Below are positions 1 to 64,000 of a stretch of DNA of 64,000 nt, piece by piece; positions within the stretch are counted from its first letter, which is position 1; the number at the start of each line of letters is the position of its first letter. Below the pieces are notes generated by a model. The model was given only the letters and a program-made list of their open reading frames with translations, was not told where the DNA came from and made no database searches. The translations under genes and the position numbers were made by a program. The stretch is from Dendrobates tinctorius (lineage: Eukaryota). The stretch lies in assembly GCF_039654945.1 (NCBI RefSeq), contig NW_027361819.1, positions 4,278,001-4,342,000 of the forward strand, in the 5' to 3' direction.

Positions 1-78
1 GGACAGAACGAACAGAACCGGCGCAGCCTCCTGCTGATTTATAGGCACCTGGGCCCAATGGGTGGAGCGCTGGTCTTA

Positions 79-642
79 GGCCTCTTTCACACTTCAGTCT
101 TTTTTGCATCAGTCACAATCCGTCAAAATGTGAAAACACGGATCCAGTGCAGATTGTCCAAAAATTGGTGCACCGGATCCGTTTTATTCGACGGATCCAT
201 TGCAGCAGCCACTGTAGGAAATTTAAAGGAATGGGAGTCGTTCGTTCGAGGGAGAGAGAGAGAAAGAGAACTTTCTGTGCCAGAACGGCTTCCTTCTGGG
301 CATGCTCAGGTGAAAAAGCGGAATCCGTTGCTGGATTCCGTCATGTGACAGACGGCGACGGATCCGTCACACATAGGCGTCCATTACTGCAGACGACGGA
401 CGGCGATCCGTTGCTGTCCGACTTTTCGACAGAGACAAAAAATGTTCCTGTGGGCGTTTCCCCCGACTTTCCGACGGATCAGTCGCATGATGGACGAAAC
501 AGATGTCCATCCATCGCAATCCGTCAGCAATACAAGTCTATGGGGAAAAAGACGGATCCAGCGGACAAATCCGTCGGATCCGTATTTTTCTCCTAACAAC
601 GGATTTTGACTGACGCCAAAAGACTGAAGTGTGAAACAGGCC
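79..642. mobile_element. MITE, PIF/Harbinger-like (copies 31453-32016, 62930-63493)
   Basis: Long imperfect TIRs GGCCTCTTTCACACTTCAGTCTTTT... / ...AAAAGACTGAAGTGTGAAACAGGCC, TTA on both flanks, internal GACGGATCCG motifs. Confidence 0.85.
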
Positions 643-658
643 TTAGGAGACAGAACAT

Positions 659-1993
659 GTGCTCGGCTGCTCTCACGGCTCTGTCTCGTGCTCCACCACT
701 CTCAGGGCTCTGTCATGCGCTCCTCCGCTCTCAGGGCTCTGTCGTGTGCTCCTCCGCTCTCAGGGCTCTGTCGTGTGCTCCATCGCTCTCACGGCTCTGT
801 CGTGGGCTCCGCCGCTCTCACGGCTCTGTCGTGGGCTCCGCCGCTCTCAGGGCTCTGTCGTGGGCTCCACCGCTCTCACGGCTCTGTCGTGGGCTCCGCC
901 GCTCTCACGGCTCTGTCGTGGGCTCCGCCGCTCTCACGGCTCTGTCGTGGGCTCCCCACTCTCACGGCTCTGTCATGCGCTCTGCCGCTCTCACGGCTCC
1001 TTCTTGCGCTCCACCGCTCTCACGGCTCTTTCTTGCGCTCCGCCGCTCTCACGGCTCCTTCTTGCGCTCCGCCGCTCTAACGGCTCCATCTTGCGCTCCG
1101 CCGCTCTCACGGCTCCATCTTGCGCTCCGCCGCTCTCACGACTCCGTCTTTGGATCTGCCGCTCTCACGGCTCCGTCTTGCGCTCCGCCGCTCTCACGGC
1201 TCCTTCTTGCGCTCCCCGCTCTCACGGCTCCTTCTTGCGCTCCGCCGCTCTCACGGCTCCTTCTTGCGCTCCGCCGCTCTCACGACTCCGTCTTTGGATC
1301 TGCCGCTCTCACGGCTCCGTCTTGCGCTCCGCCGCTCTCACGGCTCCTTCTTGCGCTCCCCGCTCTCACGGCTCCTTCTTGCGCTCCCCGCTCTCACGGC
1401 TCTGTCGTGTGCTCCGCCGCTCTCACGGCTCCTTCTTGCGCTCCACGCTCTCACGGCTCCGTCTTGCGCTCCCCGCTCTCACGGCTCTGTCGTGTGCTCC
1501 GCCGCTCTCACGGCTCCTTCTTGCGCTCCCCGCTCTCACGGCTCCTTCTTGCGCTCCCCGCTCTCACGGCTCTGTCGTGTGCTCCGCCGCTCTCACGGCT
1601 CCTTCTTGCACTCCACGCTCTCACGGCTCCGTCTTGCGCTCCCCGCTCTCACGGCTCCGTCTTGCGCTCCGCCGCTCTCATGGCTCTGTCTTGCGCTCCC
1701 CGCTCTCACGGCTCCGTCTTGCGCTCCGCTGCTCTCACGGCTCCGACGTGCGCTCCGCCGCTCTCACGGCTCCGTCTTGCGCTCCGTCGCTCTCACGGCT
1801 CCGTCTTGCGCTCCGCCGCTCTCACGGCTCCATATTCCGCTCTGCCGCTCTCACGGCTCCGTCTTGTGATCTGCCGCTCTCACTGCTCCGTCTTGCACTT
1901 TGCCGCTCTCACGGCTCCGTCTTGCGCTCCGCCGCTCTCACGGCTCCGTCTTGCGCTCCGCCGCTCTCACGGCTCCGTCTTGTTCTCCGCCGC
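659..1993. repeat. GC-rich minisatellite, 28/29 bp unit (GCTCCGCCGCTCTCACGGCTCCGTCTTGC); copies ~32033-33424 and 63510-64000
   Basis: Direct tandem repeats. Unit 2 is 57 bp (28+29) longer than unit 1. Confidence 0.95.
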
Positions 1994-2708
1994 AGCAGAG
2001 CAATGTTTAATATGTGGACGTGCCGTCCAGGGAGGTTTTCTTACATAAATGTATATCAGACCACAAAAAAATATTAAATCATTGTGTGAAAATTTCTTGA
2101 AATTTATTGATGAGGATTTTTTGCGCAGCGCCCTATAGATCTAGCAGAGTAAGGGTGTGTGCACACGTTGCGGATGCTGTGCGGATTTTTCTGTGCAGAA
2201 TCTGCATCTCTTGGCAGAATCCACAGGTCAAAATCCGCGCGTTTTTATGCGGATTTCCTGCGGATTTATTGTGGATTTCGGCTGCATTTTTACACCTGCG
2301 GATTTCTATAATGGAATGAGTGTAAAAACCGCTGCGGAATGCACACAAAGAATTGAACCGCTGCGGAATGCACACAAAGAATTGACATGCTGCGGACTCC
2401 GTGCGGAATTTTCCGCAGCATGTGCACAGCCAGTTTTTTTTTTACATAGGTTACCATTGTATTGTAAATCACTTGCAGATCTGCAGAGGATCCGCAACAT
2501 GTGTGTGGCGCCCCCAGGAGTATGGTCGCCACAGTGGCATTGCCCTCCTCCAGGGAGGGTGATGTCGTGCGTGGAGGCAATGAAGGGTCTCTCTGACAGT
2601 TAATCTCTACATACAACACAGTTCACACTCCAGGCCAGCAGAGGGAGCTCTGAACCTGAATTGGGGGAGGAGTGCTCTCTGGGGGCCAGGAAGGGAAATG
2701 AGGAGTTA

Positions 2709-3859
2709 AGCTATGTGCACACGCTGCAGATTCATCTGCGTTTTTTTCTGCGCAGATCCGCAGGTAAAACCGCAGGTCAAGTGATCTGCGGATTATCCTG
2801 CGGATTTGCCCTGCGGTTTCACACCTCTACTATGGTAAAGGTGTGAAACCGCTGCGGAAAACGCCCAAACAATTGACATGCTGCAGTGTTATGAATGAGT
2901 CACCGTAGGAGGCAAAAGCAGAAATACAAGCTAAGTCCAGAAAACCAGAGAAGTTGGCAACTATCAGATTGCAGACCCCTGAACCTATCAACACAACTAG
3001 CAGTAGCCGTGGGGGGCTCCTACGATGCCCTAGACCCCTCGATCACAGCCGGAGAGATACATAGGCCTAAAGAAAGAAAGGGGAAATCTAAACTGCCCCA
3101 GAGCAGACCCCAAAGCAATAGGCAGCCCCCAACATATAATGACGGTGAAGCAAGATGAAAATACTAACACAGATAGAAAGATAGACTGAGCAAAGACGGG
3201 GCCCCAAAACTACCTAGATAGGAAAGGACAGGAAGGCTGCTGTCTGCAATCTGCCAAAAACCTATCAGAGACAAAAGCCAACAAGCTGATATGAAAAAGG
3301 CCCTGAAGCAGCTAGGCTTCAAAAACTGAATCAGCACTCAGGTATTTTCAGAAGACAGAGCTAAATGAATTCAGCACACCCCAGCAGGGAATGGCAGAAA
3401 TCCAGAAAAACAAAGCAAAAACAAAGTCAAAGCACAAAAGCAAAAGGCCGAGCAGCAAACTTAGCTTTGGAGGAGCAGGAATTCAGACTGGTCTCCAAGG
3501 ATCCCACAGAGAAATCACCCGCAGGGCAGAAGGGCGTCGGCAGCCTTATATCCACTCCGTAACTCCACTCAGCCAGTCACAATCATCAGCCTCAGGTGTT
3601 TGACAATCAGGTTCACTACCTTTCTTTACCAGGAGAGGGAGTTCCTCGGGCCTCAGTAATGAAGGGGAAAATGAACTCACAACACTGCAGTTTGTAAACC
3701 GCAGCAAAACCGCGCGGAAAAAACCGCACCGTGAGCACAGCTTTTTTGAAACCCCATAGGGTTTCATTGTACTGTACTTTGTCAGCGGAACTGCTGCGTT
3801 TCCGCAGGGGCAAAACCGCTGCAGAAACGCAGCAGAATCCGCACCGTGTGCACATAGCC
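2709..3859. mobile_element. Harbinger-like MITE inserted in the solo LTR; copy 34140-35290
   Basis: TIRs (A)GCTATGTGCACACG / CGTGTGCACATAGCC with TTA on both flanks. Confidence 0.75.
2887..3684. mobile_element. ~0.8 kb solo LTR-like insertion (family Y); copy 34318-35115
   Basis: TGTTATG...CACAACA termini flanked by an exact 6 bp direct repeat CTGCAG (2881-2886 and 3685-3690). Confidence 0.7.
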
Positions 3860-4557
3860 TTAGTGTGAGGACTCAGGAGGGCAACGAGTGTAGACGTGTG
3901 GAGAGAAGCTGGAGGTTGAGCTGAGGACAGAGAGCTCCCTCCCAGTGAGAGCGCATGATCTGGAGCCTGGTCTCCACGGTTGTATGGATACTGAAGGTCC
4001 TGCAACAGAAACCAGAGGAGTAGGAAGCTGTAAATGCTCTATTCCCAACTAAGACTCGGAGACACAACAGCGACGGGTGAGCCAAGAGAGATAGAGGGCT
4101 ACAGCTGTCAGCCATACGAGGTAGTTCTAAGAGATGATAAGAAGGAGGAACTTCAGAGTAACACTGTACTGCATGTACCTCAAGCCAGCGCCACGGACCG
4201 AGTCACCGCTGCTGTGACAACCCCCTCTGAGAGACCGGCCCGGTACCGAGTACCCCACAGCCCTGGGAGGGCGACCCACGTGCACAGACCCTAATAGAAA
4301 TTGACTCGTTGCGGATGTGAAACTCGGGGTTTACACGGAGTATACAGGCGTCCAGGGCAGGAGATTCCTATAAATCCTTCTACTTATTAGACGTTGAGTT
4401 TTTGATGCAGTGAAAATCCCCAGAGTCACAAACTCATCGTGTGAACACGGCCGCAAACATTTTCCTAACAGCATCGAAGCCGCCGCTGATTCCAGCCTAA
4501 GGCCATGTTCACATACAGCGATGAGAGGCACAGGAAACATTTTATATCGCACCTTAA

Positions 4558-4904
4558 GGCTATGTGCACACGCTGCGGATTCTGCTGCGGATCCGCAGTG
4601 TTTCAGGCTCTGCAGCAGATTTAGCTGCGGTGTACAGTACCATTGTTTTCAATGGTAAAATGAAAATCGCTGTGCACATGCTGCGGATATTTCCGTGCGG
4701 TTTTGCTGCGGGTTCAAATTGCAGCATGTCAATTCTTTGTGCGGATTCCGCTGCGGTTTCACACCTTCTCCATTGTAGAGGTGTGAAACCGCAGGCTAAT
4801 CCGCAGGTAAACCACAAGTCTTCTGACCTGAGAATTTACCTGCGGATTTTTCCAAATCCGAGTGGAAAAATCCACAGGATCAAAATCTACGTGTGCACAT
4901 AGCC
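4558..4904. mobile_element. Harbinger-like MITE; copy 35989-36335
   Basis: TIRs GGCTATGTGCACACG / CGTGTGCACATAGCC, TAA/TTA flanks, internal TGCGGA repeats. Confidence 0.85.
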
Positions 4905-4920
4905 TTATGGCGCTGGTGCC

Positions 4921-4967
4921 GGGAATTTCACCCCATCACGCTGGAACATTCTGGGCCTTTCGCTTCC
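4921..4967. promoter_or_regulatory. Candidate immune enhancer motifs: NF-kB-like GGGAATTTCA plus Ets-IRF composite GGAAGCGAAA (minus); copy 36352-36398
   Basis: Motif matches only. They lie in non-TE-looking DNA; the unit-2 copy is ~7 kb upstream of the copy-1 CARD exon. Confidence 0.3.
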
Positions 4968-5334
4968 TAGATTATAAATTTGTTGAAATGTTATATATCT
5001 CATAAATAAGATATTCTTTTCTCAGAGGAAACATAATGGTCTTTTCCAACATATATGTCAGTTTGTTTTTTCAGTTTTTTTTCCAATAAATTTATAAAAA
5101 GTCCAAAAAATCTAGAAACCAAAACCATTCATCCCAACTTTACAGAAGGAAAAAAGGGACAAATTATGTGGCGCATGTAGCGGCAATTTTGGCTACGCCC
5201 CTGGTCACACCCCCAAGCCACACGCCCATTTACCATTTCTTTCTCCCATGGCTGGAGGAGTTGTCAGAGGGGCGCTGGCAGTGAGGGAAGTTTAGCAGAC
5301 GCTTGAGGCTGCTGGGCATAGACCCAAATCCAGG

Positions 5335-6066
5335 ATTGTCCACTGTATCCGGGGCTGTCCGCTGTATCCGGGGCTGTCCGCTGTATCCGGGGTTTGTCCA
5401 CTCTATCCGGGGGGCTGTCCGCTCTATCCGGGCTGTCCGCTCTATCCGGGGGCTGTCCGCTCTATCTGGGGGCTGTCCGCTCTATCTGGGGGCTGTCCGC
5501 TCTATCTGGGACATGTCCACTGTATCCGGGGCTGTCCGCTGTATCCGGGACTGTCCGCTGTATTCGGGGGCTGTCCACTCTATCCGGTGGGCTGTCCGCT
5601 GTATCCAGGGGCTGTCCGCTGTATCCGGGGGCTGTCCACTGTATCCGGGGGCTGTCCACTGTATCCGGGGGCTGTCCACTGTATCCGGGACTGTCCACTG
5701 TATCCGGGGCTGTCCACTCTATCCGGTGGGCTGTCCGCTGTATCCTGGTCCATCCGCTGTATCCGGGGCTGTCCGCTGTATCCGGGGGCTGTCCACTGTA
5801 TCCAGGGGCTGTCCGCTGTATCCGGGGGCTGTCCACTCTATCCGGTGGGCTGTCCACTCTATCCGGTGGGCTGTCCGCTGTATCCGGGGCTGTCCACTGT
5901 ATCCGGGGGCTGTCCACTGTATCCGGGACTGTCCACTGTATACGGGGCTGTCCACTCTATCCGGTGGGCTGTCCGCTGTATCCTGGTCCATCCGCTGTAT
6001 CCGGGGCTGTCCGCTGTATCCGGGGGCTGTCCACTGTATCCAGGGGCTGTCCGCTGTATCCGGGGC
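5335..6066. repeat. Minisatellite, 20/21 bp unit (GGGGCTGTCCGCTGTATCCG); copy ~36767-37636
   Basis: Direct tandem repeats. Unit 2 is ~138 bp longer. Confidence 0.95.
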
Positions 6067-6318
6067 CTCCGGTGCAGATTCCTGTGTCTCTGGTACAGAT
6101 CAGTGCTCCCTGGCGGATGGACCGGAGGCCACGAATCTCTGACCTTCCAGCGTCCCCTGCGGCTTTTGCTCCCCCAGGGCCGGAGCGACGTCCTCTGTGC
6201 ACCCGACTCCTCTCTAGTTGGAACCTGTGGATTATTTCTTGTTCTTCATTCACAGTCGGAGCCGCCAGAACTTTCTCATCTTTCTGTAGCGTCACTATAT
6301 GACGTCTGGTGTCTGTAA

Positions 6319-6465
6319 GGCCGTGTTCACACGGTGCAGAAATACTGCGTTTCTTGTTTTCTGCAGGATCCGCACCAATCTGCACAATAACAATCTTCTC
6401 CCCCTTATGTGATGAGTTTTTAATGTGTTTTTTATAGGACAGAAAAGCTTTGATTCTTAATAAAG
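6319..6465. mobile_element. Truncated Harbinger-like MITE end
   Basis: taa|GGCCGTGTTCACACGGTGCAG terminus; no partner TIR found downstream. Confidence 0.45.
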
Positions 6466-7232
6466 TATGGACACTGATGGTCCTGCAGCAGACACCGGTG
6501 GAGTAGTGGGCTGTAAATGCACTACTCCCATCCAAGACTTGAGGGCACAACAGCAACATTGATAGTGAGCCGGGACTCAGGAGTGAGGAGTCCCCGAAGC
6601 AGGCTCCAGCTGTCTGCCGTACAAGTAGAGTTCTTGGGAACATCTGTCAGGAGGCACTCCAGTGTAACTCAGTACTAGGAGATCTTCACACTTAAAGGCG
6701 CTATAGGGGAGACGTTCAGAAAGGCACATGTTGGCGGAGCGTTGGAAGGGAGCATTCCATCTGACCTGGAGGTTGACTGAGTCCCTGACCCGGAGGACAC
6801 GGCACGGAGGCAGGCACCTGTGTGTACTACAGACTGTGAGTAAAGCTTTGGAACTACAAGCCCCGGTGTCCTCCATTCATTCCCGTGCCAACACACCCAG
6901 CACTGCTACATCTGGGTACCAGCTTCTACACCGCTTGTGCCTCTCCTCTCCCCCTACATCCACACTGCCCTGGGGCTACAGCTCCACCTGTGGGGAGCTT
7001 CACCATCTTGGCTGCAACACACCACCAGCCCCAGTGGATCTGTCTGCAGCGTCGGCCTAACATCTCACTTGCCGAGCACCACAGGTGGCGTCACGAACTA
7101 TTCATCTAGCTACATTTCACATCTTCCTATTACTTGGGTGCCCAGGGCCACGGTCCGGGTCACTGCTGCTGTGACACATCCCACTGATACCAGCCCGGTA
7201 CCGAGTACCCCACAGCCCTGGGAGGGCGGCCC
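6466..7232 (+). mobile_element. Partial solo LTR-like element (family X); copy ~38036-38802
   Basis: Ends in CCGGTACCGAGTACCCCACAGCCCTGGGAGGGCGGCCCA. Reverse-complement homology to 16615-17370 and 25004-25740. Confidence 0.7.
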
Positions 7233-9052
7233 ATTAACTTAGTGGCCATCCCAGTTGGGGAGGAGGTAAGTGGGCTCAGGAAGCAAGTCCCTGGTTGTTA
7301 GGCATTTACCATGAAGCTAATGGAGAACTAATAAGTATTGTTGAGAAGGCCACAATTTGGAGAGTGTGTAGCCACAAAAGATTTAAGGGATCAAGAAGAT
7401 CCAGGAACGAGTTCTACAGAAATTGACCAATACTAATAATTGCCGGAGTGCGGCAATAGAAGGAGAACCAATAAGAAGACGCCTTCCACCATCGGTGACT
7501 ACCTGCCGTAGCATAGTCAGAGCTGAGGGAGGCGAAATTCCCCTAGAAGGAATGGGCTGTGGGTCAACATGTAAAACTGGACTTCTAACTGTGCGGATTT
7601 GGCAGCCTAACAAATCTTGTTGGAAGACTGCAGCGCAGCCAATCAAAAAGCTTTAAGGCTGTTGGCACTTCTGGCCTCATCACAGCCATGCCAACTAACG
7701 GCATGGCTGCAACTGGCTGGCACACCATGTGACTCAGCCTGACGCTGTCAAATAAAAAAAAAAAAAAAAATATAAAATAACCGACATGGGGTCCCCCTAT
7801 TTTGTATAACCAGCTAAGGCAAAGCAGACAGCTGGTGTGGCTATTAATAAGCTCCATGATGCACCAATTCTGGCACTTAGCCTAGGCTCTTCCCGATTGC
7901 CCTGGTGCACTTGTGTTGGCATTATACTTTAAGACACCCTTCTCATGGCCTCCATAATGTGTGGGGAACTTACTTTAGAATGACTGCAATGTTGTTAGCC
8001 ATGTTCTTTATTGACCTCTTCGAATAGTATTTTTATTTTGGGGGTAGGGGCCCAGCTAGGATTTCTGCGTTGGGGGCCCCATGATTTTTTTTGTATGCTT
8101 CTACCTGAGAGCTATAGCTTTTTTACTTTTCCATCCCCATCGCAGTATGAGGACTGGTATTCTGCAGGACAAGTTGTAGTGTTGAAGGACATCATTCACT
8201 TTGTCGCAATGTACTAGACACTGGGAACAACAATTTCAAGTGCGTTGAACTGGCAAAAAAAAAAAAAATAATAATTTCCCCGTTAACTTTTCAGGTTTAC
8301 AGCCTTTATTGTGAGGTAAAAATGACATGACAATTCTCCAGGTCAGTACGGGATCCTCGCCAAAAAAAAAAAAAAAAAAAATTTGAAAACTCTGAGAAAT
8401 ATTTCAATTCAATATTTCCTTTACAGCAGCCCAACAGATGAGGATATACTCCACCCTGGGGGTAGATAGGACAGGTGGAAGTTATAGTTTAGCCCTGAGC
8501 CTCCACCTCCTTGTACTTTGAGATCTGAGCCGTAGGAGAAGCCCTAGGGATTTTCTTGTTACAGAAGGAATGGTTTAGTATTAAACCTGTTTCCCCAATG
8601 TGGAGGCAGCAGGGTACAGCCACAGCCCTGTAACAGTCTAGTAAAAGCTTAAAAATACAGAGGGGAGGAGCTTGGGTCACCATCTATAGAGCGCAATTCT
8701 CACTGTCCTATCAGCTCGCAGGGTGGAGAAGATCCGCGTGGGGTTACAGTCTCATTCGTCACTTCCTGTCCAACGGAGTTTTAGCTTTTAGCTTACATTT
8801 CTGAAGATATAATAACTCCCCTTTATCCTGGATGTAGTATTTGTGGTGAGTAGAAGAAATGAAGGCATTTTCCAGGAGTATTTTTGGTTTTCTCTGAATG
8901 GAGGAAGAGCTGAGGTGTAATAACTGTGAAGCTGCGCTCCTGCTGCCCGGACTGAGAGGTGACAAAGCCACGCGGGGGAAGCCGGACATTTACTGCGATG
9001 TGTCCTCCTCTACAGACAGAGCTGATCCAATTCATATGGGGTCGATCTCACC

Positions 9053-9187
9053 TGTGAACAGGCCTCCCTGGCTGACAGATGTAGCAAAGCTGAGGTTTCC
9101 TTAATCACTAACAGGTAAATACAACCTGTTAGTGATTCAGGAAACCTCAGCTTTGCTACATCTGTCAGCCAGGGAGGCCTGTTCACA
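9053..9187. repeat. Near-perfect palindrome, 64 bp arms with a 7 nt loop; copy 40631-40765
   Basis: TGTGAACAGGCC...CACTAACAGGT-aaataca-ACCTGTTAGTG...GGCCTGTTCACA. One mismatch in copy 1, five in copy 2. Confidence 0.92.
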
Positions 9188-10793
9188 AGTCGACACTTAA
9201 AAGCAACCCGCCATGTTTAGTTACTGCCCTCCAATTGCCACCGTGGCTCAGTTCCGAGTGACGGTTCTCTTCCCCCCCCCCCCCCATGTTAGAAGCCACA
9301 GTGTCATGTGGAGAGAGCAGTAGAACTAAACCACACCTTCTCTTCCTTTTCTGTGCTATGGGATAGGACCGTCAGGGAAGGCATGGCTTCAACTTATCAC
9401 TGCTCTCCACATGACATTGGTTATTTCCTCAGCCACAAAATGCGTGAGAAAGTTACTAGTCTGGCCCAGAGTAGAGTACCCCTTTAAGCAATAGCTTTAC
9501 CATAAGGGCATGGAATCAAAACACTGACCAACAGCACGTCTTCAGATTGAAAACCGCTCTTGACATTAGTTCTGCTTCGGCACTGAAGTATACCCTGAAT
9601 TAAAGTGCTTGGCTATTTCTCAATGCCAATGGGTTTTTAGCTGAGAACAGTGTCTTATTCTGGATGACCAGACCTTTACCCATCTAGTGTTAGTTCATAA
9701 AAGCTTTAGTCCTAAATCCTCATTTAAAGATTTTGTGGCACAGACCCAAAATAGAAATTGAAGCCAGGACATCATGGCGAACAGCTCCAAAGATGAACGC
9801 CTCCTCACCAACTTGCCATAATTCACACAAGTTATGGCTAAGGATAGAGAGAGTATCCTCCAACACTTGGAAGAAAATACATTTTGAAAGTGGAAACCAT
9901 TTTGGGTTCAGGATGCTGTGCCAAGCTTCAAATAAGATAAAGAGCATGGTTTCCAACCACCAAGATTTTCAGAATTAAAGGATGCACAAACTGCGAGTTT
10001 TTAAATATGCATTTAATACATTGGTGTAAAGCTTACATCATAGGAACATATTACCAGACATCACCAGAGACCTTAGAGAGCCATCAAAGCTTAGAAGCGC
10101 ATTTACTATAATAGAGCAAAACTACAGAGAAGATGCGATTAGTGGAAAGTTAAATGGTTGGTGGAAGCACAGATCATGTCTTGCCCCAGTATCACATTCA
10201 TAGAGCACCAAGAACTGGAGGAACCAACACTGATCTTCTGCCAATGAGACATCTATAGCTGGGACCAGACCACTGGCGAATACGTGAACTTGTCACAGAA
10301 GTAATAAGGATCCCCAGAACACCTGATCAGTGGTCACATCACTGCCAAACAAACATCTTAGTTCTGCTATTGACCAAAGAATGATAATCCAGGAGAAGAG
10401 TTCATGAATTCTGAGTCCAGAGGATGGCTTTGTAGGACGGTCCCATGTCCTCATCACAATATGCTTTCAGTGAGACTGATGGAGCCTAAATGAAGGAAGA
10501 CAAAACTCAGTTTCTGGATTATTACATAGGAGCTCTCAATAGCAGTTTGATAAGTTAGATGTAAAGAGGAAAGATGACTTAGTATAGAGGGCAAGACAAG
10601 GCTTAATTATATATTGCTTGGATTTCATTGCTGGGAGGAGCCATGAGCCTGTGAGTCCTACTGACACCACCCACACTGCCGATTGGCTGCTCTCCTCAGA
10701 TGAGTATACATGTGACGGGTCAGCAGGACTCAGGCTCACTAGTGGTCCGGACAGCAATTTAGACATACACATGGATTCACCTGATTAAAGCTG

Positions 10794-10799
10794 TTTATT
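10794..10799 (-). terminator. Candidate polyadenylation signal AATAAA, ~43 nt after the stop (copy 2 ~42367-42372)
   Basis: tttatt on the + strand in both copies. An alternative ATTAAA lies at 10012-10017. Confidence 0.35.
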
Positions 10800-53100: not shown

Positions 53101-56100
53101 TCCTTACCAAAATCCCACAGTGTCTGCTTTTTCAGCTTTCTTCTCTGCTCACTTTCTACAACTGAACTTGGACAAAACAAAAATTCATAATCTTTCACCC
53201 CCCACCCCCCATCTCACTCTACCCCTCCACCAGACCCATCCATCAATGTCAATGGCTGCTCACTTTCCCCAGTCCTGCACGCTCGGTGCCTTGGGGTGAT
53301 CCTCGACTCTGCCCTCTTTCAAGCCACATAGCCAAACCCTTGCTTCCTCCTGCCATCTCAAACTCAAATATTTCCTGGATCTATGCATTCCTTGACACCA
53401 CAAAAACACTAGTGCACACCCTTATCTCGCCTACCATAGAAACCTTCAAAGAGAACTTGAAGACCCACCTCTTCTGACAAGCCTACAACGATCCTCAGTC
53501 TACAGAACCGCCGTACGACCAGCTCTACCTGCTCCTAGAGAATCCTCACCCATCCCTTGTAGACAGCCCTTGCGGGCAGGGTCCTCTCCCCTTCTGTACT
53601 TGTGTCTTGTATATTGTACTTTTCTATATTTACCCCTTTTCACTTGTAAAGCGCCATGAAATAAATGGCACTATAAAAATGTATAGTTCACTGATCCACC
53701 TGACAAGGATCTACAGTGAAGACATCGGGATGTCCTTCGGACTGGAGACGTGCAGCCGGTGGGTAAAGTGAGGCAAGGTAGTCAAGACTGAGTGGAGTTA
53801 CCAGAAGGGCATGTAGCAGATGTACAGACATGCTACAAGGACCTAGACATCCCACAGGGATACAGTAACCATGATGAGGAGGCAAGGAAAGCAGCAACAT
53901 TCAAATATCAAAAGGTAAGACAAGTCCTGAAGAGCCAGCTCAATGGGAAGAATAAAATTCACACCATCAATACATATGCCATGCCAGTTATCAGATACCC
54001 TGCTGGCATAGTGTGCTGGCCAAAAGAATAGATGGAGGCTGCAGATGTAACGACACGAAAGCTCCTCACAATGCATGGAGGTCTCCACCCCAAGTCTAGC
54101 ACCCAAAGATTGTATACCAACAGAAAGGAGGGTGGTCGAGGCTTGATAAGCATCTAAGCCACCATCACAGATGAAACAAGGAGTATTCAGGAATACATCA
54201 GAAGAATCGTACCAAAAGATGAGATGCTGATAGAAAGCCTAAGGCAACAACAAGTCTGGAAACAGGATCATGAAGCGCCATGGCTAGACAAGCCACTGCA
54301 TGGGATGTACCATCGACAGAAAATGGTGGTGGTTGACATGGAGAAGTCCTACCAATGGCTGGAGAAAGCTGGACTCAGACAGCACAGAGGCGCTAATCAT
54401 AGCAGCACAAGAGCAAGAACTAAGTAACAGATCCATAGAAGCAGGAGTCTACCACACAAGACAAGACCCAAGGTGCAGACTATGCAAAGAAACCTCAGAA
54501 CCAGTCCAACACATAGTGGCAGGATGCAAAATGCAAGAACAGCATATACTGAATGCCACAACCAAGTAGAGGAAATTGTATACAGGAACATCTGCACAGC
54601 ATATGGGCTAAGACCCCTCAAGACCAGGTGGGAGACCCAAGAGAAAGTGGTGGAGAATGAAAAGGCTAAAATCCTGTGGGACTTCAAAATCCAGATGGAT
54701 AAGCAGGTGTTGGCTAACCAACCAGACATTGTGATAGTAGACAAGGATCAGAAGACAGCAATGATAATAGATGTTGCTGTCACTTGGCACTGCCACATCA
54801 GAAAGAATGAATATGAGAAGCTGGAGAAAAACCAGGGCCTCAAAGGAGAACTGGAGAAGATGTGGAAGGTGAAGGCCACAGTGATTTCAGTGGTGATAGG
54901 AGGACTTGGAGCAGTGACTCCTAAGTTGGAAGAATGGCTACAACAGATCCCAGGAGCAACAGCTGAGCTCTGTCCATAAAAGCGCAATGCTGGGAACAAC
55001 TAAGAGCCTGTGCAGAACCCTCAAACTCCCAGGCCTCTGGTAGAAGATCTGAGAATGAGGAAGGACAACAAAGACCACCCCAGTGGGGGAGAGAAGGAAG
55101 TTTTTAATTATGTATTATATATTTCTGACCCTCCTCAGTGTGATATAGTATATAGTAATATGGCCACTTTGTTCTCTCTTGATATTCGCTTTGAGAAACT
55201 GCTGCGAGTCACCACTGCTGGTGAAATCACAGATCTGTGGTGATCGAGCTTTGAGGTGGACCTGCCCATCTGGAATCAAGTGGCTGACATATCACTTTCT
55301 AGCACCCTGGTTGAATACTTGTTTATACGCATCAATAACGGCCATTGTTGGGTTCAATAAATGCCGTGACAGACCTTCATCCAACAGCAAGGCTCATGTC
55401 ATGAGTGGTCTTTTTGCATGACAGCCATCAGCACAGAAGGCCAAGGCCTTGTTTCAGCCTGGAGGCTCAGAGCTTTGGGAGCGGCACAAGGCAGTTATCC
55501 ATGTTCCCTCACAATTTCCTGAACACTTTTTAAACTGTTCTTAATGCGGCCAAGAGACAAGATTGTAAGTGGGTGTAGCCGAGACGTACGTTTATTTTTG
55601 CCATGGTGGACATACCACACAGCATCACCGAGGCAGTTACCAGGCAGATTGCTTGGTGGGTGGAGCCTCCAGGTGACCTATAAATAGCTGTAATAGTTTT
55701 TCCAGTCAGTGTTTCAGCAAGGGCCCCGCCAGAGGGCAGCCACCAGCCCAGCCAGGGCCCCGCCAGAGGGCAGCCACCAGCCCAGCCAGGGCCCCGCCAG
55801 AGGGCAGCCACCAGCCCAGCCAGGGCCCCGCCAGAGGGCAGCCACCAGCCCAGCCAGGGCCCCGCCAGAGGGCAGCCACCAGCCCAGCCAGGGCCCCGCC
55901 AGAGGGCAGCCAGTGAACATGTGAGGAGATTATTTTTTCCCCCCTTCCAGTGGGCAGAGTAGAGATGGACCGACCAGAAGCCTTTGGATTGCATGAGAAC
56001 TTGGACCCTTCAGGAAGATGGCATTCGTTGGTCTGCACAGCACCCTTAGGCTACCAGAATACTATGCTGTGGACACAGGAGGAGTACAGGCTGGGAGAGT

Positions 56101-59100
56101 AGTCCCCTATAATGGAGAATGGAAAACTGGAACCCTACAACATAAGGAAGGCCAGAGGAGGCCAGGATATGGGGGTCTGCTGGGGAACATCACCCTTGTG
56201 GGATAGAAGTAGACTATTGTGTCAGCTTGGATAACAGGATGAGCTCTGTTCACACTCGCCGTTTATCACGCCTCATATGTGCCGTTTCCTGCATCTGTCT
56301 AAGTGTTGCCCGTCTGAGGAACTTTGTCATCTGCACATGTAATACAGCTGAAAATATTACTAGTATCCATATGACCGCTGCAGCCAATTACTGGGCTCAG
56401 TGGTAATTCCCATAAGCCCCCAAAACGCTGAGTCTAGTTCTTAGAAAGCATTGTAACACCAAATCGTACCAGCATGTAACTGGGTCGCCCTCCCAGGGCT
56501 GTGGGGTACTCGGTACCGGGCCAGTGTCAGGGGGATGCGTGTCACAGCAGCGGTAACCCGGTCTGTGGCCCTGGGCGCTCAAATCAATGGTGGTTTTGTG
56601 GTTAATGTAATAGTTTGTGACGCCACCTGTGGTGTTTGGCAAGGGAGGTGTTAAGCTAGCGCTGCATGTAGATCCGCTGGGACTGATGGTGTGGTGCAGC
56701 AAAGATGGTGTATCTCCCCACAGGTGAAGCTGTAGTCCCAGGGCAGTGTAGGTGCAATGGATGAGGAGAGGCACAGAATGGTGTGGATGCTGGTACCCAG
56801 ATGTAGCAGTGCTGAAGGTGTTAGCAACGAATGAATGGCGGACACCAGGACTTGCAGTTTCAAAGCTTTACTCACAGTCCGTGGTACACACTGGTGCCTG
56901 CCTCCACGCTGTGTCCTCCGGGGTAGAGACTCAATCAACCTCCCGGGCAAGTCAGGGCTCTCCTCTCCAACATGTACCTTCCTGAACGACTCCGCCAATG
57001 CGCCTTGTGGTGTGAAGCACTCCAGTACTTAGTTACCCTGGAATACCTCCTTACAGATGTTCTTAGAACTCTCCTTGTACGGCAGACAGCTGTAGCCTGC
57101 TTCGGGGACGCCTCGCTCCCGGCTCTGTGTTGCTGTTGTGCCTCAAGTCTTGGATGGGAGTAATGCATTTACAGCCTACTACTCCACCGGTGTCTGCTGC
57201 AGAACCATAAGTGTCCATACAACCTCAGGGACCGGGCCCCGGCCTTGCGCTGAGAACCTATAGGCAGGGTTCCTCTTCCAACCCACGTCTCCTCTGTTCT
57301 CCTACTCCTTCGTTCCGTACTTGTCTTTCTCTCCTATGGAAGCTTAGGTTGCAGTTCTACATCTCTCTCCCGTGCCAGCTGGCTCAGGTTACTGAGGCAG
57401 CTGCAGCACTCCTTCCTCCATCCCTTCTTCCAGGGATCCTCTCCTGTCTGAGTGACTTCCTACTCCACTGACCTCCAATTCTAAACCTTCCCAACCTTTT
57501 ATATGAATCTGAACTCCACCCACCTAACAGCACATCCAGTGTTCCATGCAGGGAACCACCAAAGGTGCTCTGCTACTCTCTAAGCACTGAGCCGCTATGT
57601 GGTTGTGCAGAACTACACTGTTGTGTGGGGTGCGAGTGTTGGAGTGTGGAAAGGAGTTCCCAACTTACCAGGATGGTGGGGTACCACACCTTAGGAGAAG
57701 GTGCAGTACTTCTGTGGCGACTGAGCCTCAGGGGCGCCACATAACTCACTGAAGGATTTCGCTCTGCTCACCAGTTTATCATGAGATTCTCACATTCCCA
57801 GCCACATACAGACTAGCTTTTCTTCCTGCTTCTCAGTGAGGCACGGGCTGTAATGTTTCACTGAACATTTAGAGAATGATGAAGAGCAGCTCATCAGCAC
57901 GTGACCAAGTGTGCAAGTCACATATGAGTGGTCACTTGTCTAATCAAACATATACCGTGTATAGGAGGAGGCTCCAAACTGAAAACCTAGATCTGGCTCC
58001 GATTCAGGATGATGGAGAAACTTCAGAAACCAATTTTATTATCCCCAAAGTATTTTTTTTCTTCATGCCATGCAAACAAAGTCCATTATTCAGGTGGAAG
58101 AATTCAAAATAATGGATGAGACAAAGGTCTCCTCCTCTACATCCAATGGTGGTGACACTTCCCCCCCCCCCCCCCATCAAGATTGAAAATCTTTCAAAAT
58201 CGATTAGGTCATGGGACCAGATTGATAGGAGGGAGCTCCGGCGTCCTCCATTAGGGGATCTAGAGCCGTAAAGTGGATGTGCCGTAATAAGACAATGGTG
58301 GCTGCATGAAAGTGGGTCGCCCTCCCAGGGCTGTGGGGTACTTGGTACCGGGCCGGTGTCAGCGGGATGTGTCACAGTGGCGGTGACCCGGTCCGTGGCC
58401 CTGGGCGCTCAAGTAATGGGGGAATTGAAATGGTGGAATGTGGTTGAATAGTTCGTGACGCCACCTGTTGTGTTCAGCAAGGGAGGTGTTAAGCCGATGC
58501 TGCATGCAGATCCTCTGGGACTGATGGTATGGTCCAGCAAAGATGTAAAAGCTCCCCACAGGTGAAGCTGTAGCCCCAGGGCAGTGTAGATGTGGTTGGC
58601 ACGGGGATGTAGCAGTGCCGGAAGGGTTGGAAGCAGACAGACACAGCGGGGTGCAATTTCTGTACCTTTACTTGATAAATGCAGACCAGGGTCCTGATTA
58701 CAGATGGTACCGGAGCAGGCTAGCCTGGAAGCAACTCAGGGATTCTCCCTCAGCAGATGGGCTGTGCAGTCTCCTTCCTAGCGCTTATTTGAGGGATCTC
58801 CAGTACTGAGTTACACTGAAGTTCCTCCTGTCAGATGTTCCCAAGAACTCTACTTGTACGGCAGACAGCTGTAGCCTGTTCCAGGGACTCCTCACTCCTA
58901 AGTCCCAGCTTACTATCAGTGTTGCTGTTGTGCCCTCAAGTCTTAGATGGGAGTAGGGCATTTACAGCCTCCTACTCCTCTGGTGTCTGCTGTAGGACCA
59001 TCAGTGTCCATACAGCCATGGAGACCAGGCTCCAGTTCATGCGCTCTTGCAGGAGACAAGCTCTTCCTCTCAGCTCTATCTCAGCGCTCCTTCCTCACGT

Positions 59101-60624
59101 CTGCACACTTCACCCTCCGCAGACTAACTGACCACTCCTTCCTCTTGGCCCTCAGAGAGCACTCCTCCCCTTAATTCCAGTTCAGAGTCCCCCTGCTGGC
59201 CTGGAGTGGAACTGTGTTGCATGTATTGGTTAACTGCGAGAGAGACCCTTCACTACTTCCAAGCCTGGCATTACCCTCCCTGGAGGAAGGTAAAGCCACT
59301 GTGGCAGCCATACTCCTGGGGGCACCACATTAGCATCAAGAAACCAACCATCTACAGATGCTTCAAGATCATGAATGCAGAGAAACAAGAGCTACCAATC
59401 ATCAAGAGCCTAGTTAGAAACAATGCGTGGATAAACCCCAGAGGCCCCAATAAAAGATAAGTCAGAGTACTGAGGCCATGTCATCAGTAACAAGACTACG
59501 GTTGTTGGATGGCGTCTTTCCTACTTCATGGATAATTAAATCCGCATTGTCCATTCCAGCTACTAGACTGGTTTACTTCCATTAACTAGTTACAAAAAAA
59601 AATAAAAAATTCCTCCATCTCAGGAAGCAAATTGTTCTCAAAACCTCCATCCAGGATTTCTTTCAATAGAGGAACTTAAAGTTTGATGTGAGGGGAACGC
59701 TTCTTTATCCTCTTAATATATTGTAGTCATCATATTCTATAGCGCTGCGTACTTACAATTGCTCATTTTGCCTTTCTACCCAAATAATAATTTTCTATTC
59801 TCTGCTCTATGTAGACACAGGAGGTCTCTTGTTCCTGAAAAACCTCATTCTCCCCCTGACAAAGCTGCTCCCTCCTCCCCCTCATGTTCCCTTTTGCAGT
59901 GATGAGTCCTACTACAGGGAAAATTGACCTCATAGCTCCTCAGTTTTTTTTGTTTTTTTTAATCACTTGATTTCACAGACTTAATGGGAAAAAAGAATTA
60001 TCCAGGTAGAAAGGAGGAATGGGCAACTGATGACTGCAATATTTTAAGAGGATAACAATTCTGATGGTAAGTGGGCTTCTTTAAGTTTAGCCAATTGGTG
60101 CAGAAAATCCAAAGAAACAAAAAGATAAAAAAAAAAAAAAAGCACCAAATCATGTACATTGTGTGTATAGTTCAACATGAAAAATTTTGGTGAAGCGTCC
60201 TCCAACAATCACAGTACACATTTTGTACAAGGCATTGTACTGAGGGGCATGAAACTAAAGTTCTTTATGCTGCCTAGAAGTATATGGTCGGCAGCACAAG
60301 GACAATCTATAGAACTACTGTACAGACTTTAACAACCGGCACCAGGTGACTGTCCAATAACAGCACAATTTGCATGAAGCCCCCGGATAATCCTTCAGGG
60401 CACATGATTTTCTATAAATATTTAAAAAAAAAAAAAAAAACGGTGACATTTCGGTCTAATTGGACCATGAGACTCAGATTTAAGTTTTTTTTGTGCTTCT
60501 GTTTTTCCTACATCCCTAAACTTATTCCCCTGCACCCCTCAACATAGTTTTTTTCCCCATATTTTGCCATTAATGGATTGTGCAAGTTTGATCTCCCCCA
60601 ACATAATGGAAGTAGGATACTCAC

Positions 60625-60907
60625 TGTCCTGGAGATGTTCAGATACAGATGACAATCCTGGGAATCTGGGAATCATGTTCTGTAGATGATTCAGGAACTT
60701 CTGGCAGGCCTCTTCTCCCTTGTGAAGAATCAGGTCCATCAGACTAAGGGTTTTCTCCACCGGACTCACAACTTCGCACAGATTTCCATGTTCTTCAGAA
60801 GTTATAAGCTGGAGAGAGTTCACTTCATCCATGAAACCATCCACGTCCTTCTCAAACACCTCGGAGAATTTCCATCTCAGACGGTGGATGGTCTTGGATG
60901 CCGCCAT
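60625..60907 (-). CDS. CARD coding exon, copy 2
   Basis: Protein-identical to copy 1 (one synonymous GTC/GTG change). Donor GTGAGT at 60624; exon begins at 60924. Confidence 0.85.
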
Positions 60908-62851
60908 GATAACTGAAGGTCAGCCTGCGAAAAATGTAAGAGATCAGTTACTACTGCATGAACAGATGGACACCGTCCTAAAGAAAAGTATAAAAACTGA
61001 GCACTGTGCAATAATATAACGAGGCGCTCATGCCACAGCGAGATACGGACCTTCGAGAAGAGACAAGGGGACAACTAGGGAAGAACAGGGAAGAGTTTTC
61101 CTGGCTGACCAAGGGGAAGCCAGCAAAAGAGGCAACCATGGATGGACAAGGGGGTGGGAAGAAAAAAAAAAAGTTAGAGATGAGGACAAAGGGGTGGCTG
61201 CAGACAAATACCAATGAAAAAAACATGGTGGCTCAGTGGTTATTACTGTAGTCTTGCAGTCCTGGGTTCAAATCCCACCTAGGACAACATCTGCAAGGCG
61301 TCTATGTTCTCCCCCTGTTCCATGGATTTCCTCCAGGTTCTCCGGTTTCCTCTCAGTCTAAAGACATACTGATAAGTAATCTAGATTGTGAGCCCCAATG
61401 GGGACAGCAATGATAATGTCTGTAAAGCTGTGGAATTAATGGTGCCATACAATAGAGGAAAATAGATAAAAATAAGATTGGGGTGAGGGGCAAGCAAGAT
61501 GGTTAGAGTAGATGACATAGTGAAAGACAAGGGGTGGCAACAAAGCAGGAGGCACCCTAGGGGGAATAGGGAAAGAGTGGAGAAGGCGGCCCTCAAGTAG
61601 AGATAAGGGAAGGATGCAGAAGAGGACAGAGGATATTTAAAAGAACGAAGGGAAAAAAAAAAAAACAAAACAAAAAAAAAAAAAAACACAAGCAAGGCCA
61701 TGTGCCAACATAGTGATTCCTGAGCAGAATTGCACACGCTGCTCCCGTGAAGACACATGCGGTTTTTGACGCGCCTTTTTAAGCGTTTGTCAAGCGTTTT
61801 TGCCCATACAATTGATGGTATGTGGACTCGCACGCGATTCCACAAAATTGATGAACATGCTGCTCTTTACCGATAAGTGATTCCACAGCGGTAAAAAACG
61901 CACCATTGGCACAACATGTGCATTCTCAGTTAGGAATCCATGGAATGCATTTAAGCGTTTCTGCGGCAGAATCGTGCATTTAAAATCGCCGCGGAAACGC
62001 TTAATAAGCGCTCCGTGGGCACACAGCCTCAAGGTTTCAAAGGACAAGGTCATCGAAGAACAAGGGAAAAGGTTGGAGAAGAGAGACGAGCGCTGCAGAG
62101 GAAGACACTCCGGAGGAGGAGCCAACACTAGCGGGGTTTCACCACAACGCTCAGTTTATTCAATAGCTCTTGGAATAAAATAAAAGTTCCATAATTAGAT
62201 GTGATTAACAAAAACAAAAAAAAACAAAAACAGATACATGCAATCTCAGGGGAGATTATAAAACCTGAACTAAAGCGATATTTGCAGCGCGGAGCTTTAA
62301 CAGATCAGGTGCAGATTGAATTTTGTACGATAACTGAGAAGACACTGGATTAAAGACTTCATTGTTCGATGATCGTTAAACTCCCCAAGACCATGTTCAC
62401 ATGTTGCATTTTTTGCAGCTTTTTTAAATAAAAAAAATAAAGTCTGCGCTTAACATCTCCAGCAAAAGCCCTGAGGTCACAGATCTCCTGCACGCTGGGT
62501 TTTTGTTCCAGACTGAGAACTGAGATCTGCGGCACCTTAGAAATCAGTGAGAAAGTTAAGGGAAAAAAAAAAGTGACCCACAGGCTTCGCTGGCTGCATT
62601 TTGGGGTGATCAAATCATGCACTGTAATGAGTTACATAATCAGCACAAAAAAAACCAAAACACAACAACAACGTATGAACATAGTCCAAGGACACTGTGC
62701 AACACCACTGCACCAACAGGGGGCGCCACCCTGGTGCCTACAATCATACTGCAGGCAAAGCCCCCCCCATCTCTGGGTCACAGCAGAACCAAGAGCCCTG
62801 ACCCACAATCCCCAGCACTCACCTTCTATGTGGAGTCCAGCACAAGGCTGA

Positions 62852-64000
62852 GGACAGAACGAACAGAACCGGCGCAGCCTCCTGCTGATTTATAGGCACC
62901 TGGGCCCAATGGGTGGAGCGCTGGTCTTAGGCCTCTTTCACACTTCAGTCTTTTTTGCATCAGTCACAATCCGTCAAAATGTGAAAACACGGATCCAGTG
63001 CAGATTGTCCAAAAATTGGTGCACCGGATCCGTTTTATTCGACGGATCCATTGCAGCAGCCACTGTAGGAAATTTAAAGGAATGGGAGTCGTTCGTTCGA
63101 GGGAGAGAGAGAGAAAGAGAACTTTCTGTGCCAGAACGGCTTCCTTCTGGGCATGCTCAGGTGAAAAAGCGGAATCCGTTGCTGGATTCCGTCATGTGAC
63201 AGACGGTGACGGATCCGTCACACATAGGCGTCCATTACTGCAGACGACGGACGGCGATCCGTTGCTGTCCGACTTTTCAACAGAGACAAAAAATGTTCCT
63301 ATGGGCGTTTCCCCCGACTTTCCGACGGATCAGTCGCATGATGGACGAAACAGATGTCCATCCATCGCAATCCGTCAGCAATACAAGTCTATGGGGAAAA
63401 AGACGGATCCAGCGGACAAATCTGTCGGATCCGTATTTTTCTCCTAACGACGGATTTTGACTGACGCCAAAAGACTGAAGTGTGAAACAGGCCTTAGGAG
63501 ACAGAACATGTGCTCGGCTGCTCTCACATCTCTGTCTCGTGCTCCACCTCTCTCACATCTCTGTCTCGTGCTCCACCTCTCTCACGGCTCTGTCGTGTGC
63601 TCCTCCGCTCTCAGGGCTCTGTCGTGCGCTCCTCCGCTCTCAGGGCTCTGTCGTGCGCTCCTCCGCTCTCAGGGCTCTGTCGTGTGCTCCACCGCTCTCA
63701 CGGCTCTGTCGTGCGCTCCTCCGCTCTCAGGGCTCTGTCGTGCGCTCCTCCGCTCTCAGGGCTCTGTCGTGTGCTCCACCGCTCTCACAGCTCTGTCGTG
63801 TGCTCCACCGCTCTCACGGCTCTGTCATGTGCTCCACCGCTCTCACGGCTCTGTCGTGTGCTCCACCGCTCTCAGGGCTCTGTCGTGTGCTCCACCGCTC
63901 TCAGGGCTCTGTCGTGGCTCCACCGCTCTCACGGCTCTGTCGTGTGCTCCACCGCTCTCACGGCTCTGTCGTGTGCTTCACCGCTCTCAGGGCTCTGTCG
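62852..64000. repeat. Start of tandem unit 3 (truncated by window)
   Basis: Same MITE and minisatellite start as units 1 and 2, with private SNPs and a different order of minisatellite variants. Confidence 0.93.

Follow-up and report, generated by a model that had tools for sequence, protein, structure and literature searches.

A Dendrobates tinctorius tandem array of intact CARD-VLIG GTPase genes whose units show mosaic divergence

Introduction

Among interferon-inducible large GTPases, the VLIG/GVIN proteins (mouse Gvin1/VLIG-1, human GVINP1 and URGCP) form the fourth class (PMC8286824). The proteins encoded by a gene array of Dendrobates tinctorius, described here, have the same domain order (URGCP_N, URGCP, URGCP_GTPase, GVIN1, GVIN1_C), and nearly all of their coding sequence is likewise contained in a single giant exon. 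Unlike the described family members, the frog protein has an additional N-terminal CARD that is supplied by a separate exon. Among anuran homologues, annotation of a CARD is common but not universal. The frog protein is also smaller (1663 aa) than the mammalian VLIGs (200-285 kDa).

The mouse IRG and GBP clusters consist of interferon-inducible GTPase paralogues arranged head to tail, and have been shaped by lineage-specific gain, birth-and-death evolution and gene conversion. The frog array resembles these clusters, and lineage-specific immune arrays in general, in its head-to-tail paralogues and lineage-specific gain of copies. However, copies are 99.5% identical over all 31 kb of the unit, introns and intergenic DNA included, and the array is thus younger and more homogeneous than the classical clusters. 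The closest counterpart is in Ranitomeya imitator, where two neighbouring copies encode orthologous 1663-aa CARD-VLIG proteins (XP_069591620 and XP_069591621, or P0127 and P0002). Human minisatellites of the MS32 type are associated with recombination hot spots. A GC-rich 20-mer minisatellite of the frog unit sits exactly where divergence between units switches, although this is one coincidence only.

Results

Layout of the array

The window (the whole 64-kb stretch of DNA that was analysed) contains no Ns. Self-BLAST and MAFFT alignment identified two complete units and the beginning of a third, all in the same orientation:

1..31374: unit 1 (31,374 bp), with an arbitrary start that is the start of the window
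31375..62851: unit 2 (31,477 bp), which directly follows unit 1 in the same orientation
62852..64000: unit 3, of which the first 1149 nt lie within the window

Alignments continue unbroken across both unit boundaries, and thus there is no spacer between units. Units 1 and 2 were compared in full at the DNA level, as was the start of unit 3; the third complete copy was compared as protein. Between units 1 and 2 there are 164 substitutions (0.52% outside minisatellites) and 38 indel events (407 nt in sum). All indels of at least 19 nt fall inside three minisatellites, and the largest elsewhere is 13 nt. Thus, all interspersed-repeat insertions are common to both units. The single orientation, contiguity and high identity across genic and intergenic DNA are those of a tandem duplication.

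A third distinct 1663-aa copy (c3, XP_073403544) is annotated by RefSeq on the gap-free HiFi contig that carries the genes of units 1 and 2. This contig of GCA_039654945.1 (7,132,936 bp) has at least three distinct complete CARD-GTPase loci. The CDS spans of the three array genes are 18,593, 18,493 and 18,495 bp, and the first two correspond exactly to the coordinates in the window. The assembly is a contig-level hifiasm assembly from HiFi reads of ~19-kb libraries (PMC11152451), so the head-to-tail joins depend on read overlap rather than on scaffolding.

The gene in each unit

Each unit encodes one intact gene on the minus strand with two coding exons, one for the CARD and the other a 1555-codon URGCP/GVIN GTPase exon:

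29152..29451, minus strand: CARD exon of the unit-1 gene (Pfam CARD PF00619, E 1.2e-7), identical to the start of RefSeq protein P0122
10823..15550, minus strand: large exon of the unit-1 gene (URGCP, URGCP_GTPase), corresponding to P0122 / XP_073403545
60625..60924, minus strand: CARD exon of the unit-2 gene, with one synonymous difference from unit 1
42396..47123, minus strand: large exon of the unit-2 gene (ORF 47082-42415), corresponding to P0001 / XP_073403547

In unit 1, the CARD exon has its acceptor (cag/G) at 29452/29451, its ATG at 29434 and a phase-1 donor after 29152 (ACA/gtgagt). The large exon follows an acceptor (ttatag/GC) at 15551/15550. Its ORF extends from 15509 to 10842, with the stop codon at 10844-10842, and the exon ends in the 3'UTR with a donor after 10823. 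The phase-1 donor and the acceptor preserve the frame across the join between CARD and GTPase, and the RefSeq models are spliced identically. In fact, both window genes are already in RefSeq, annotated exactly as found here.

The GTPase ORFs of units 1 and 2 are open over all 1555 codons and align without gaps, with 22 residue differences, and the CARD exon protein is the same in both. Exons were queried against Pfam one by one; the joined protein was taken from the RefSeq models. The match to CARD scores 32 bits, above the cut-off of 23.9. URGCP (PF25496) was identified in the GTPase exon with an E of 3.5e-107. Both copies match URGCP_GTPase (PF25683) over 396/396 profile positions (E 5e-206), with an intact P-loop motif (GVQSTGKS). 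Matches to PF26773, PF25974 and PF26772 are precomputed on the identical RefSeq proteins, which have the C-terminal GVIN1 and GVIN1_C domains. Overall, the 1663-aa product is a CARD plus URGCP/GVIN protein ("very large inducible GTPase"). The region immediately C-terminal to the GTPase (codons 921-1150) is helical.

Other long ORFs (606-2048, 5303-6302 and others) lack Pfam matches and were set aside as minisatellite artefacts. An Rfam scan of unit 1 returned no matches.

Transcription and splicing

The array genes are transcribed. RNA-like contigs of samples X1, X4 and X7 cover 10000-15545 and end at the acceptor of the large exon. They also reveal an intron in the 3'UTR:

10486..10822, minus strand: 337-nt 3'UTR intron of the unit-1 gene (GTAAGT...TTTAG), which begins 20 nt past the stop codon

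The corresponding joint (10484 to 10822/3, with CT..AC ends) is present in contigs from X7 and X1, loose ends agree with it in X4, and depth dips at 10600-10799. An alternative splice at 14235, considered from an X7 contig, was rejected due to the absence of a GT donor. It probably reflects branching of the graph at the variant site 14245.

The 5' region and promoter presumably lie at 29435-31374 or beyond. The ISRE consensus GAAANNGAAAST was not found within the window, and matches to a looser IRF core in the same 64 kb are confined to the coding exon, at a frequency expected by chance. Interferon-type promoter motifs were therefore dropped from consideration.

Minisatellites and interspersed repeats

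Three minisatellites, among them the GC-rich 29-mer and 20-mer, differ in length between the units:

661..1993: 29-mer minisatellite of unit 1, 46.3 copies
32035..33424: its unit-2 allele, 48.3 copies
63509 onwards: its unit-3 allele, with a different consensus
5337..6065: 20-mer minisatellite of unit 1, 36.9 copies
36769..37635: its unit-2 allele, 43.9 copies
24150..24435: 34-mer minisatellite in the intron of unit 1, 8.4 copies
55715..55912: its unit-2 allele, 5.8 copies

Self-alignment also identified a ~1.2-kb interspersed repeat, with at least four copies per unit in the same places in units 1 and 2. In unit 1 these are:

16612..17850, plus strand: one copy
6465..7233, minus strand; 25001..26264, plus strand; 26833..27558, plus strand: other copies, 79-84% alike

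A weak remnant of a LINE reverse transcriptase is also common to both units at the same place.

The structural part of an earlier sequence-only reading of this DNA is consistent with these results. It proposed at least three units in one orientation without a spacer, intact GTPase ORFs and CARD exons in both units, unit-specific minisatellite alleles, and an amplification that followed the insertion of every transposable element, all of which were taken to be shared. Each of these claims held.

Mosaic divergence between units 1 and 2

Divergence between units 1 and 2 is far from uniform across eight segments (chi-square p 2.3e-20). Non-CpG divergence is 0.078-0.10% in two blocks and 0.66-1.19% in two others, a ~10-fold contrast, and GC and CpG density are similar in most blocks. 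Three of the blocks are:

15510..26000: low-divergence block with 10 substitutions over 10.2 kb (non-CpG 0.078%), made up mostly of the intron that separates the CARD and GTPase exons
6066..15509: high-divergence block (0.86-1.05% in total), which takes in the coding exon, the 3'UTR and the 3' flank
29435..31374: block with the highest divergence (1.39%, or 1.19% at non-CpG sites), located upstream of the CARD exon

Within the low-divergence block, the probability of finding seven or fewer substitutions at 16001-26000, where 50.9 are expected, is 1.6e-14. The 20-mer minisatellite marks a switch from ~0.1% to ~0.8% divergence. Over the unique positions 1-660, units 1 and 2 are identical and unit 3 is different at five sites. 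Substitutions are also clustered locally (e.g., 12486-12599 and 30727-30744).

The dS of the coding exon between units 1 and 2 is 0.019. Given this value and the ~10-fold heterogeneity among blocks, we infer that parts of the units have long been separate. The description of the array as very young, made in the sequence-only reading, is thus not sustained. Positive selection over the whole gene was rejected (omega 0.31). Codons 921-1150 have 12 nonsynonymous versus two synonymous codon changes (Fisher p 0.016, for a region picked post hoc).

Other copies, individuals and relatives

The groupings of the three copies by derived residues contradict one another. Unit 1 and c3 have derived states in common at 606, 1083 and 1116, whereas units 1 and 2 have them in common at 687 and 1419. 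Block-wise heterogeneity and conflicting signal among copies are the pattern expected of sequence exchange.

Comparison with other samples was limited to 10000-15999 and used Logan contigs, in which bubbles are popped. Nearly all differences between units 1 and 2 in this interval reappear, differently combined, in contigs from other samples, so these SNPs are not private to a unit as had been supposed. The variant sites recur in four samples, and both letters are present inside single samples. Some of the variant mosaics in those samples may be assembly chimeras, as popped bubbles could produce them. In X2, depth is ~9-11 on variant-specific contigs and ~17-20 on shared contigs (classes of ~10, 19 and 26). 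Depth in X2 was rejected as a measurement of copy number because the window is without single-copy flank.

In a protein tree, the D. tinctorius copies form one clade with support of 100/100 and tips of 0.003-0.008. The R. imitator pair is separate, and its longer tips (0.023 and 0.05) indicate an independent, older duplication.

Discussion

Origin of the array

The results support a real, D. tinctorius-specific tandem array of intact immune-type genes, and this much of the sequence-only reading stands; a single very young amplification does not. Two observations, the mosaic divergence and the contradictory groupings by shared derived residues, support exchange between units. We consider it probable that this is a genuine species-specific array with a period of ~31.4 kb and at least three intact, transcribed genes, the units of which have exchanged sequence since duplication. 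It would have originated by segmental tandem duplication after the split of Dendrobates and Ranitomeya, and later than every interspersed-repeat insertion now within the unit. It would not be the product of one fresh burst. Later, unequal crossing-over and/or gene conversion would have operated between units, leaving some blocks of units 1 and 2 ~0.08-0.1% apart and others, including the coding exon, ~1% apart. Such exchange would also place the same variants in different combinations across copies and individuals. With the rate assumed to be 1e-9 per site per year, an age of a few 1e5 years would follow for the young blocks and one of several million years for the old blocks. The best reading is that the array is millions of years old in parts, with units that are still being reshuffled.

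It is conceivable, if unlikely, that the array functions as an active recombination cassette that diversifies a CARD-VLIG innate sensor/effector and varies within populations, as do NLR or KIR arrays. The GC-rich minisatellites at the unit edges would then seed unequal exchange, and the products would be new combinations of a few variant residues, concentrated at codons 921-1150.

The blocks with ~1% divergence need not be old if the duplication is only as young as the 0.08% blocks and the remainder was imported later, by conversion from diverged members of the cluster. The local clusters of substitutions fit such imports, and there are other CARD-VLIG paralogues on the array contig (e.g., P0004, with 88% identity). 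However, of the ~12 residues found in unit 2 alone, P0004 has only one (1114 K), and 11 match no sampled paralogue or orthologue. P0004 was rejected as the source of the unit-2 changes for this reason. Furthermore, the diverged tract is ~9.4 kb long and includes non-coding flank, yet differs by only ~1%, far below the divergence of an 88% paralogue. Import of this kind is therefore quite unlikely.

Assembly artefact is very unlikely as an account of the whole array. In such an artefact, the locus would have a single copy or fewer copies than the contig shows, and some units would be alleles, joined because hifiasm ran allelic haplotypes together or went round a loop in the repeat graph. It would explain why differences between units look like segregating variants in other samples, and the X2 depths fit just two sequence types at equal dose. 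The array record is also a small (7.1-Mb) contig. The unit exceeds the length of the HiFi reads (PMC11152451), and there are few differences to anchor reads within the 10-kb low-divergence block, so the number or order of units may be wrong, and the assembler could have erred in the unit count within the contig. However, three distinct complete loci and the start of unit 3 on one gap-free contig are more than two haplotypes can supply, which makes falsely concatenated haplotypes unlikely as the full explanation. A head-to-tail join in a string graph requires reads that cross the boundary, so at least one junction should be true. CDS spans and minisatellite alleles vary among all three copies, and the independent adjacent pair in R. 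imitator makes tandem duplication at this locus plausible biology.

A single very recent burst, with all differences private and post-duplication and their uneven density due to local mutation rate, is strongly disfavoured: it accords with the high overall identity, the absence of unit-specific repeat insertions and the intact genes, but the tenfold contrast persists with CpG sites removed and at similar GC, the coding exon has diverged more than the intron (constraint would predict the reverse), the groupings implied by shared derived states contradict one another, supposedly private variants reappear in other individuals, and unit 3 departs from units 1 and 2 at sites where these two agree.

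Implications

The finding is otherwise ordinary, as immune GTPases are expected to form lineage-specific tandem arrays and the genes were in RefSeq. The genes may have a role in immunity. In populations of Rana sierrae that are recovering from chytrid fungus, the strongest signal of directional selection came from a GVINP1-like region (PMC13074149). At the array locus, short-read genotyping and selection scans in dendrobatids would be confounded by paralogous variants. Among the classes of interferon-linked GTPases, GVIN/VLIG is the least understood, and a near-identical array with expressed, CARD-bearing genes is a natural system for the study of copy gain, exchange and diversification.

Organization of the repeat array

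We identified by self-BLAST two full repeat units and the start of a third, in the same orientation, in a window that contains no Ns. The features of the array are as follows.

1-31374: unit 1, head to tail with unit 2
31375-62851: unit 2, head to tail with units 1 and 3
62852-window end: unit 3 (1149 nt visible)
661-1993 (unit 1), 32035-33424 (unit 2): 29-mer minisatellite, 46.3 and 48.3 copies
5337-6065 (unit 1), 36769-37635 (unit 2): 20-mer minisatellite, 36.9 and 43.9 copies
24150-24435 (unit 1), 55715-55912 (unit 2): 34-mer minisatellite, 8.4 and 5.8 copies
10842-15509 (unit 1), 42415-47082 (unit 2), minus strand: 1555-codon ORF (Pfam URGCP, URGCP_GTPase)
29451-29152 (unit 1), 60924-60625 (unit 2), minus strand: CARD exon (PF00619, 32 bits; cut-off 23.9)

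Both unit boundaries are crossed by an unbroken BLAST alignment (24238-32522 vs 55715-63999), and therefore the units adjoin without spacer. Aligned with MAFFT, units 1 and 2 differ by 164 substitutions and 38 indel events (407 nt in total). All indels of at least 19 nt lie inside the three minisatellites, and the largest elsewhere is 13 nt. A ~1.2-kb interspersed element is present at least four times per unit, in copies that are 79-84% alike, along with other repeat fragments and a weak LINE reverse transcriptase remnant; all lie at identical positions in units 1 and 2. The sequence-only reading is thus borne out in its description of the array (spacer-free units, shared transposable element insertions, minisatellite alleles that differ per unit, intact GTPase ORFs and CARD exons).

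The first 660 unique bases are identical in units 1 and 2 and differ at only 5 sites in unit 3, and the adjacent 29-mer minisatellite has in unit 3 (63509-64000) a consensus clearly unlike that of units 1 and 2. A 141-nt palindrome (9050-9190, with an equivalent in unit 2) is located in the gene's 3' flank and has 92% identity to its reverse complement. A 228-codon ATG ORF on the minus strand of both units (5957-6643 and 37527-38213) adjoins and slightly overlaps the 20-mer minisatellite. No Pfam family matches it, and it is probably spurious.

Gene carried by each unit

Both 1555-codon ORFs are open and have full-length Pfam matches, to URGCP at E 3.5e-107 and to URGCP_GTPase at E 5e-206, with 22 residue differences and no gaps between them. 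The CARD exon is located ~13.6 kb upstream of the large ORF exon. Its donor (ACA/gtgagt, phase 1) and the large-exon acceptor (ttatag/GC at 15551/15550) preserve an uninterrupted frame as far as the ATG at 15509. We searched the CARD and GTPase exons with profiles one by one; the joined model is that of RefSeq, whose proteins use exactly this exon join. Many anurans have annotated proteins with the CARD plus URGCP/GVIN architecture, and therefore the fusion is old and already in databases; our literature search found no published account of it.

The unit-1 and unit-2 genes are identical to the RefSeq proteins P0122 (XP_073403545) and P0001 (XP_073403547). A third protein, P0123 (XP_073403544; hereafter c3), has 14 residue differences to unit 1 and 27 to unit 2. 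Each protein has 1663 aa, and all three genes are on one 7,132,936-bp record of the D. tinctorius assembly (GCA_039654945.1), with CDS spans of 18,593, 18,493 and 18,495 bp, the first two coinciding exactly with the window coordinates.

Could the assembler have concatenated allelic haplotypes rather than paralogous units? The assembly is a contig-level hifiasm product built from HiFi reads >10 kb; the libraries were of ~19 kb and haplotigs were purged aggressively (PMC11152451). The window therefore lies inside one ungapped contig, whose head-to-tail joins we infer to rest on overlapping reads, not scaffolding. Against the array, the reads are shorter than one unit and a 10-kb low-divergence block offers few anchoring differences. 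However, three distinct, structurally complete loci and a unit-3 start distinct from units 1 and 2 exceed the two haplotypes of a single-copy gene, so the array is very likely real, a grade that covers the tandem duplication itself rather than the exact number or order of units. In the DNA-like run X2, contig depths of ~9-11 (variant-specific) and 17-20 (shared) do not separate alleles from paralogues.

Transcription and a 3'UTR intron

Four public runs from four samples of the species (X1, X2, X4 and X7) were aligned on 10000-15999; all public runs with this stretch are Logan contig sets. X4, X7 and X1 behave like transcriptomes, with coverage of 10000-15545 that ends at the predicted acceptor, a depth dip at 10600-10799 and, in X4 and X7, zero depth at 15600-15999. 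The RNA-like contigs contain a joint 10484->10822/3 with ends CT..AC (GT..AG on the minus strand), and the genomic sequence there has the canonical ends of a 337-nt intron (10822-10486; unit-2 equivalent 42059-42395) that starts 20 nt past the stop codon. The coverage, the stop at the acceptor and the spliced joint indicate that the gene is transcribed in at least three samples. X1 has both letters at nearly every exon difference between units 1 and 2, and therefore both variant types are expressed.

Spliced RNA-like contigs from three runs back this 3'UTR intron. A cluster of substitutions lies partly inside it (10491-10666) and, in its earlier part (10273-10439), in the downstream 3'UTR exon. 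One X7 contig leaves the large exon at 14235 and continues for ~210 nt in sequence that is GC-rich and unrelated; as position 14235 lacks a GT donor, this is probably a de Bruijn branch beside variant 14245. One low-depth (6x) X2 contig skips 98 nt of the coding exon (11055-11154), and may be either an artefact of contig building or a frame-broken copy with this deletion at another place in the same individual. RNA-like runs X9-X15 of a second, related species (organism B) hold 25-29% of the 31-mers of 10000-15999, and a close orthologue appears to be expressed there too.

Mosaic divergence and probable exchange between units

Outside the minisatellites, mean divergence of units 1 and 2 is 0.52%, distributed in strongly distinct blocks (chi-square p 2.3e-20).

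Divergence between units 1 and 2 by block
1-5336: 0.22%
6066-10841: 1.05%
coding exon: 0.86%
16001-26000: 0.07% (7 substitutions vs 50.9 expected, P = 1.6e-14)
26001-29065: 0.49%
29435-31374: 1.39%

The contrast does not track GC or CpG density and is still ~tenfold after removal of CpG-context sites (0.078-0.10% vs 0.66-1.19%). The exon has diverged more than the intron, the reverse of the expectation from constraint (Nei-Gojobori dS = 0.019, dN = 0.0059, omega = 0.31). One block boundary falls on the 20-mer minisatellite, a single coincidence that is suggestive. Anuran substitution rates are ~1e-9 per site per year; if this assumed rate applies, the young blocks would be a few hundred thousand years old and the old ones several million.

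Nine dendrobatid relatives served to polarise the amino acid positions at which the three copies differ. About 11 derived changes are private to unit 2 and fall at positions that do not otherwise vary. The derived residues at 606, 1083 and 1116 are common to unit 1 and c3, those at 687 and 1419 to units 1 and 2, and no single tree explains the groupings. In the protein tree the D. tinctorius copies form a clade (support 100/100) whose tips measure 0.003-0.008, compared with ~0.08 for the path to Ranitomeya, placing duplication, or the last homogenisation, after the Dendrobates/Ranitomeya split; this gives the same order of magnitude as the rate-based ages. R. imitator has its own independent pair, and a second paralogue lineage (P0004, 88% identical) predates the split of these genera.

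Variant sites in contigs of the other samples (10000-15999) correspond almost one for one to unit-1/unit-2 differences, with the unit-2 letter, in combinations that differ among X2, X4 and X7. Within X1 both letters occur at nearly every listed site; elsewhere they occur together at few (11847 and 12531 in X4; 10364 and 11847 in X7). Bubble-popping in contigs may exaggerate this mixing. Among the rows listed, the only further variants are 13500 (C>A) and 13575 (A>G), found in neither window unit; they suggest that the population has additional sequence types, either other copies or other alleles.

The mosaic, the conflicting residue groupings and the varying combinations of variants fit inter-unit exchange: some blocks of the array members would have been long separate and others recently homogenised, with unequal crossing-over and/or gene conversion among at least three units as the putative source. 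They do not point to a single, very recent burst after which each unit gained mutations of its own. Thus, the sequence-only reading stands as to a real array of intact genes with exchange between units, and fails where it took the array to be very young (blocks differ ~tenfold and exon dS is 0.019) and its SNPs to be private to units, since they recur in other samples in other combinations. Its further proposals, ongoing expansion and copy-number variation between individuals, keep the standing of hypotheses.

Function and significance

Function we infer from family membership only. VLIG/GVIN proteins are the fourth class of interferon-inducible large GTPases (PMC8286824), and the CARD would permit homotypic recruitment into CARD signalling assemblies. 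No ISRE consensus was identified in the 64-kb window, but we located neither the first exon nor the promoter, and the gene may still be interferon-inducible. Just C-terminal to the GTPase, codons 921-1150 (12060-12750) have 12 nonsynonymous and 2 synonymous codon changes, vs 10 and 14 elsewhere (Fisher p 0.016 for a region picked post hoc; regional omega 0.67). Amino acid differences between the copies cluster in this helical region; the majority arose in unit 2 only, as derived residues where other dendrobatids are invariant.

The species-specific array is real; its genes are intact and expressed, and its units show a history of exchange. Such tandem arrays are a known kind among immune GTPases, and these genes are already in RefSeq. 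The relevance of the array is chiefly twofold: Rana sierrae recovering from chytrid has a GVINP1-like selection signal (PMC13074149), and, in practice, paralogous variants at this locus will look like heterozygosity.
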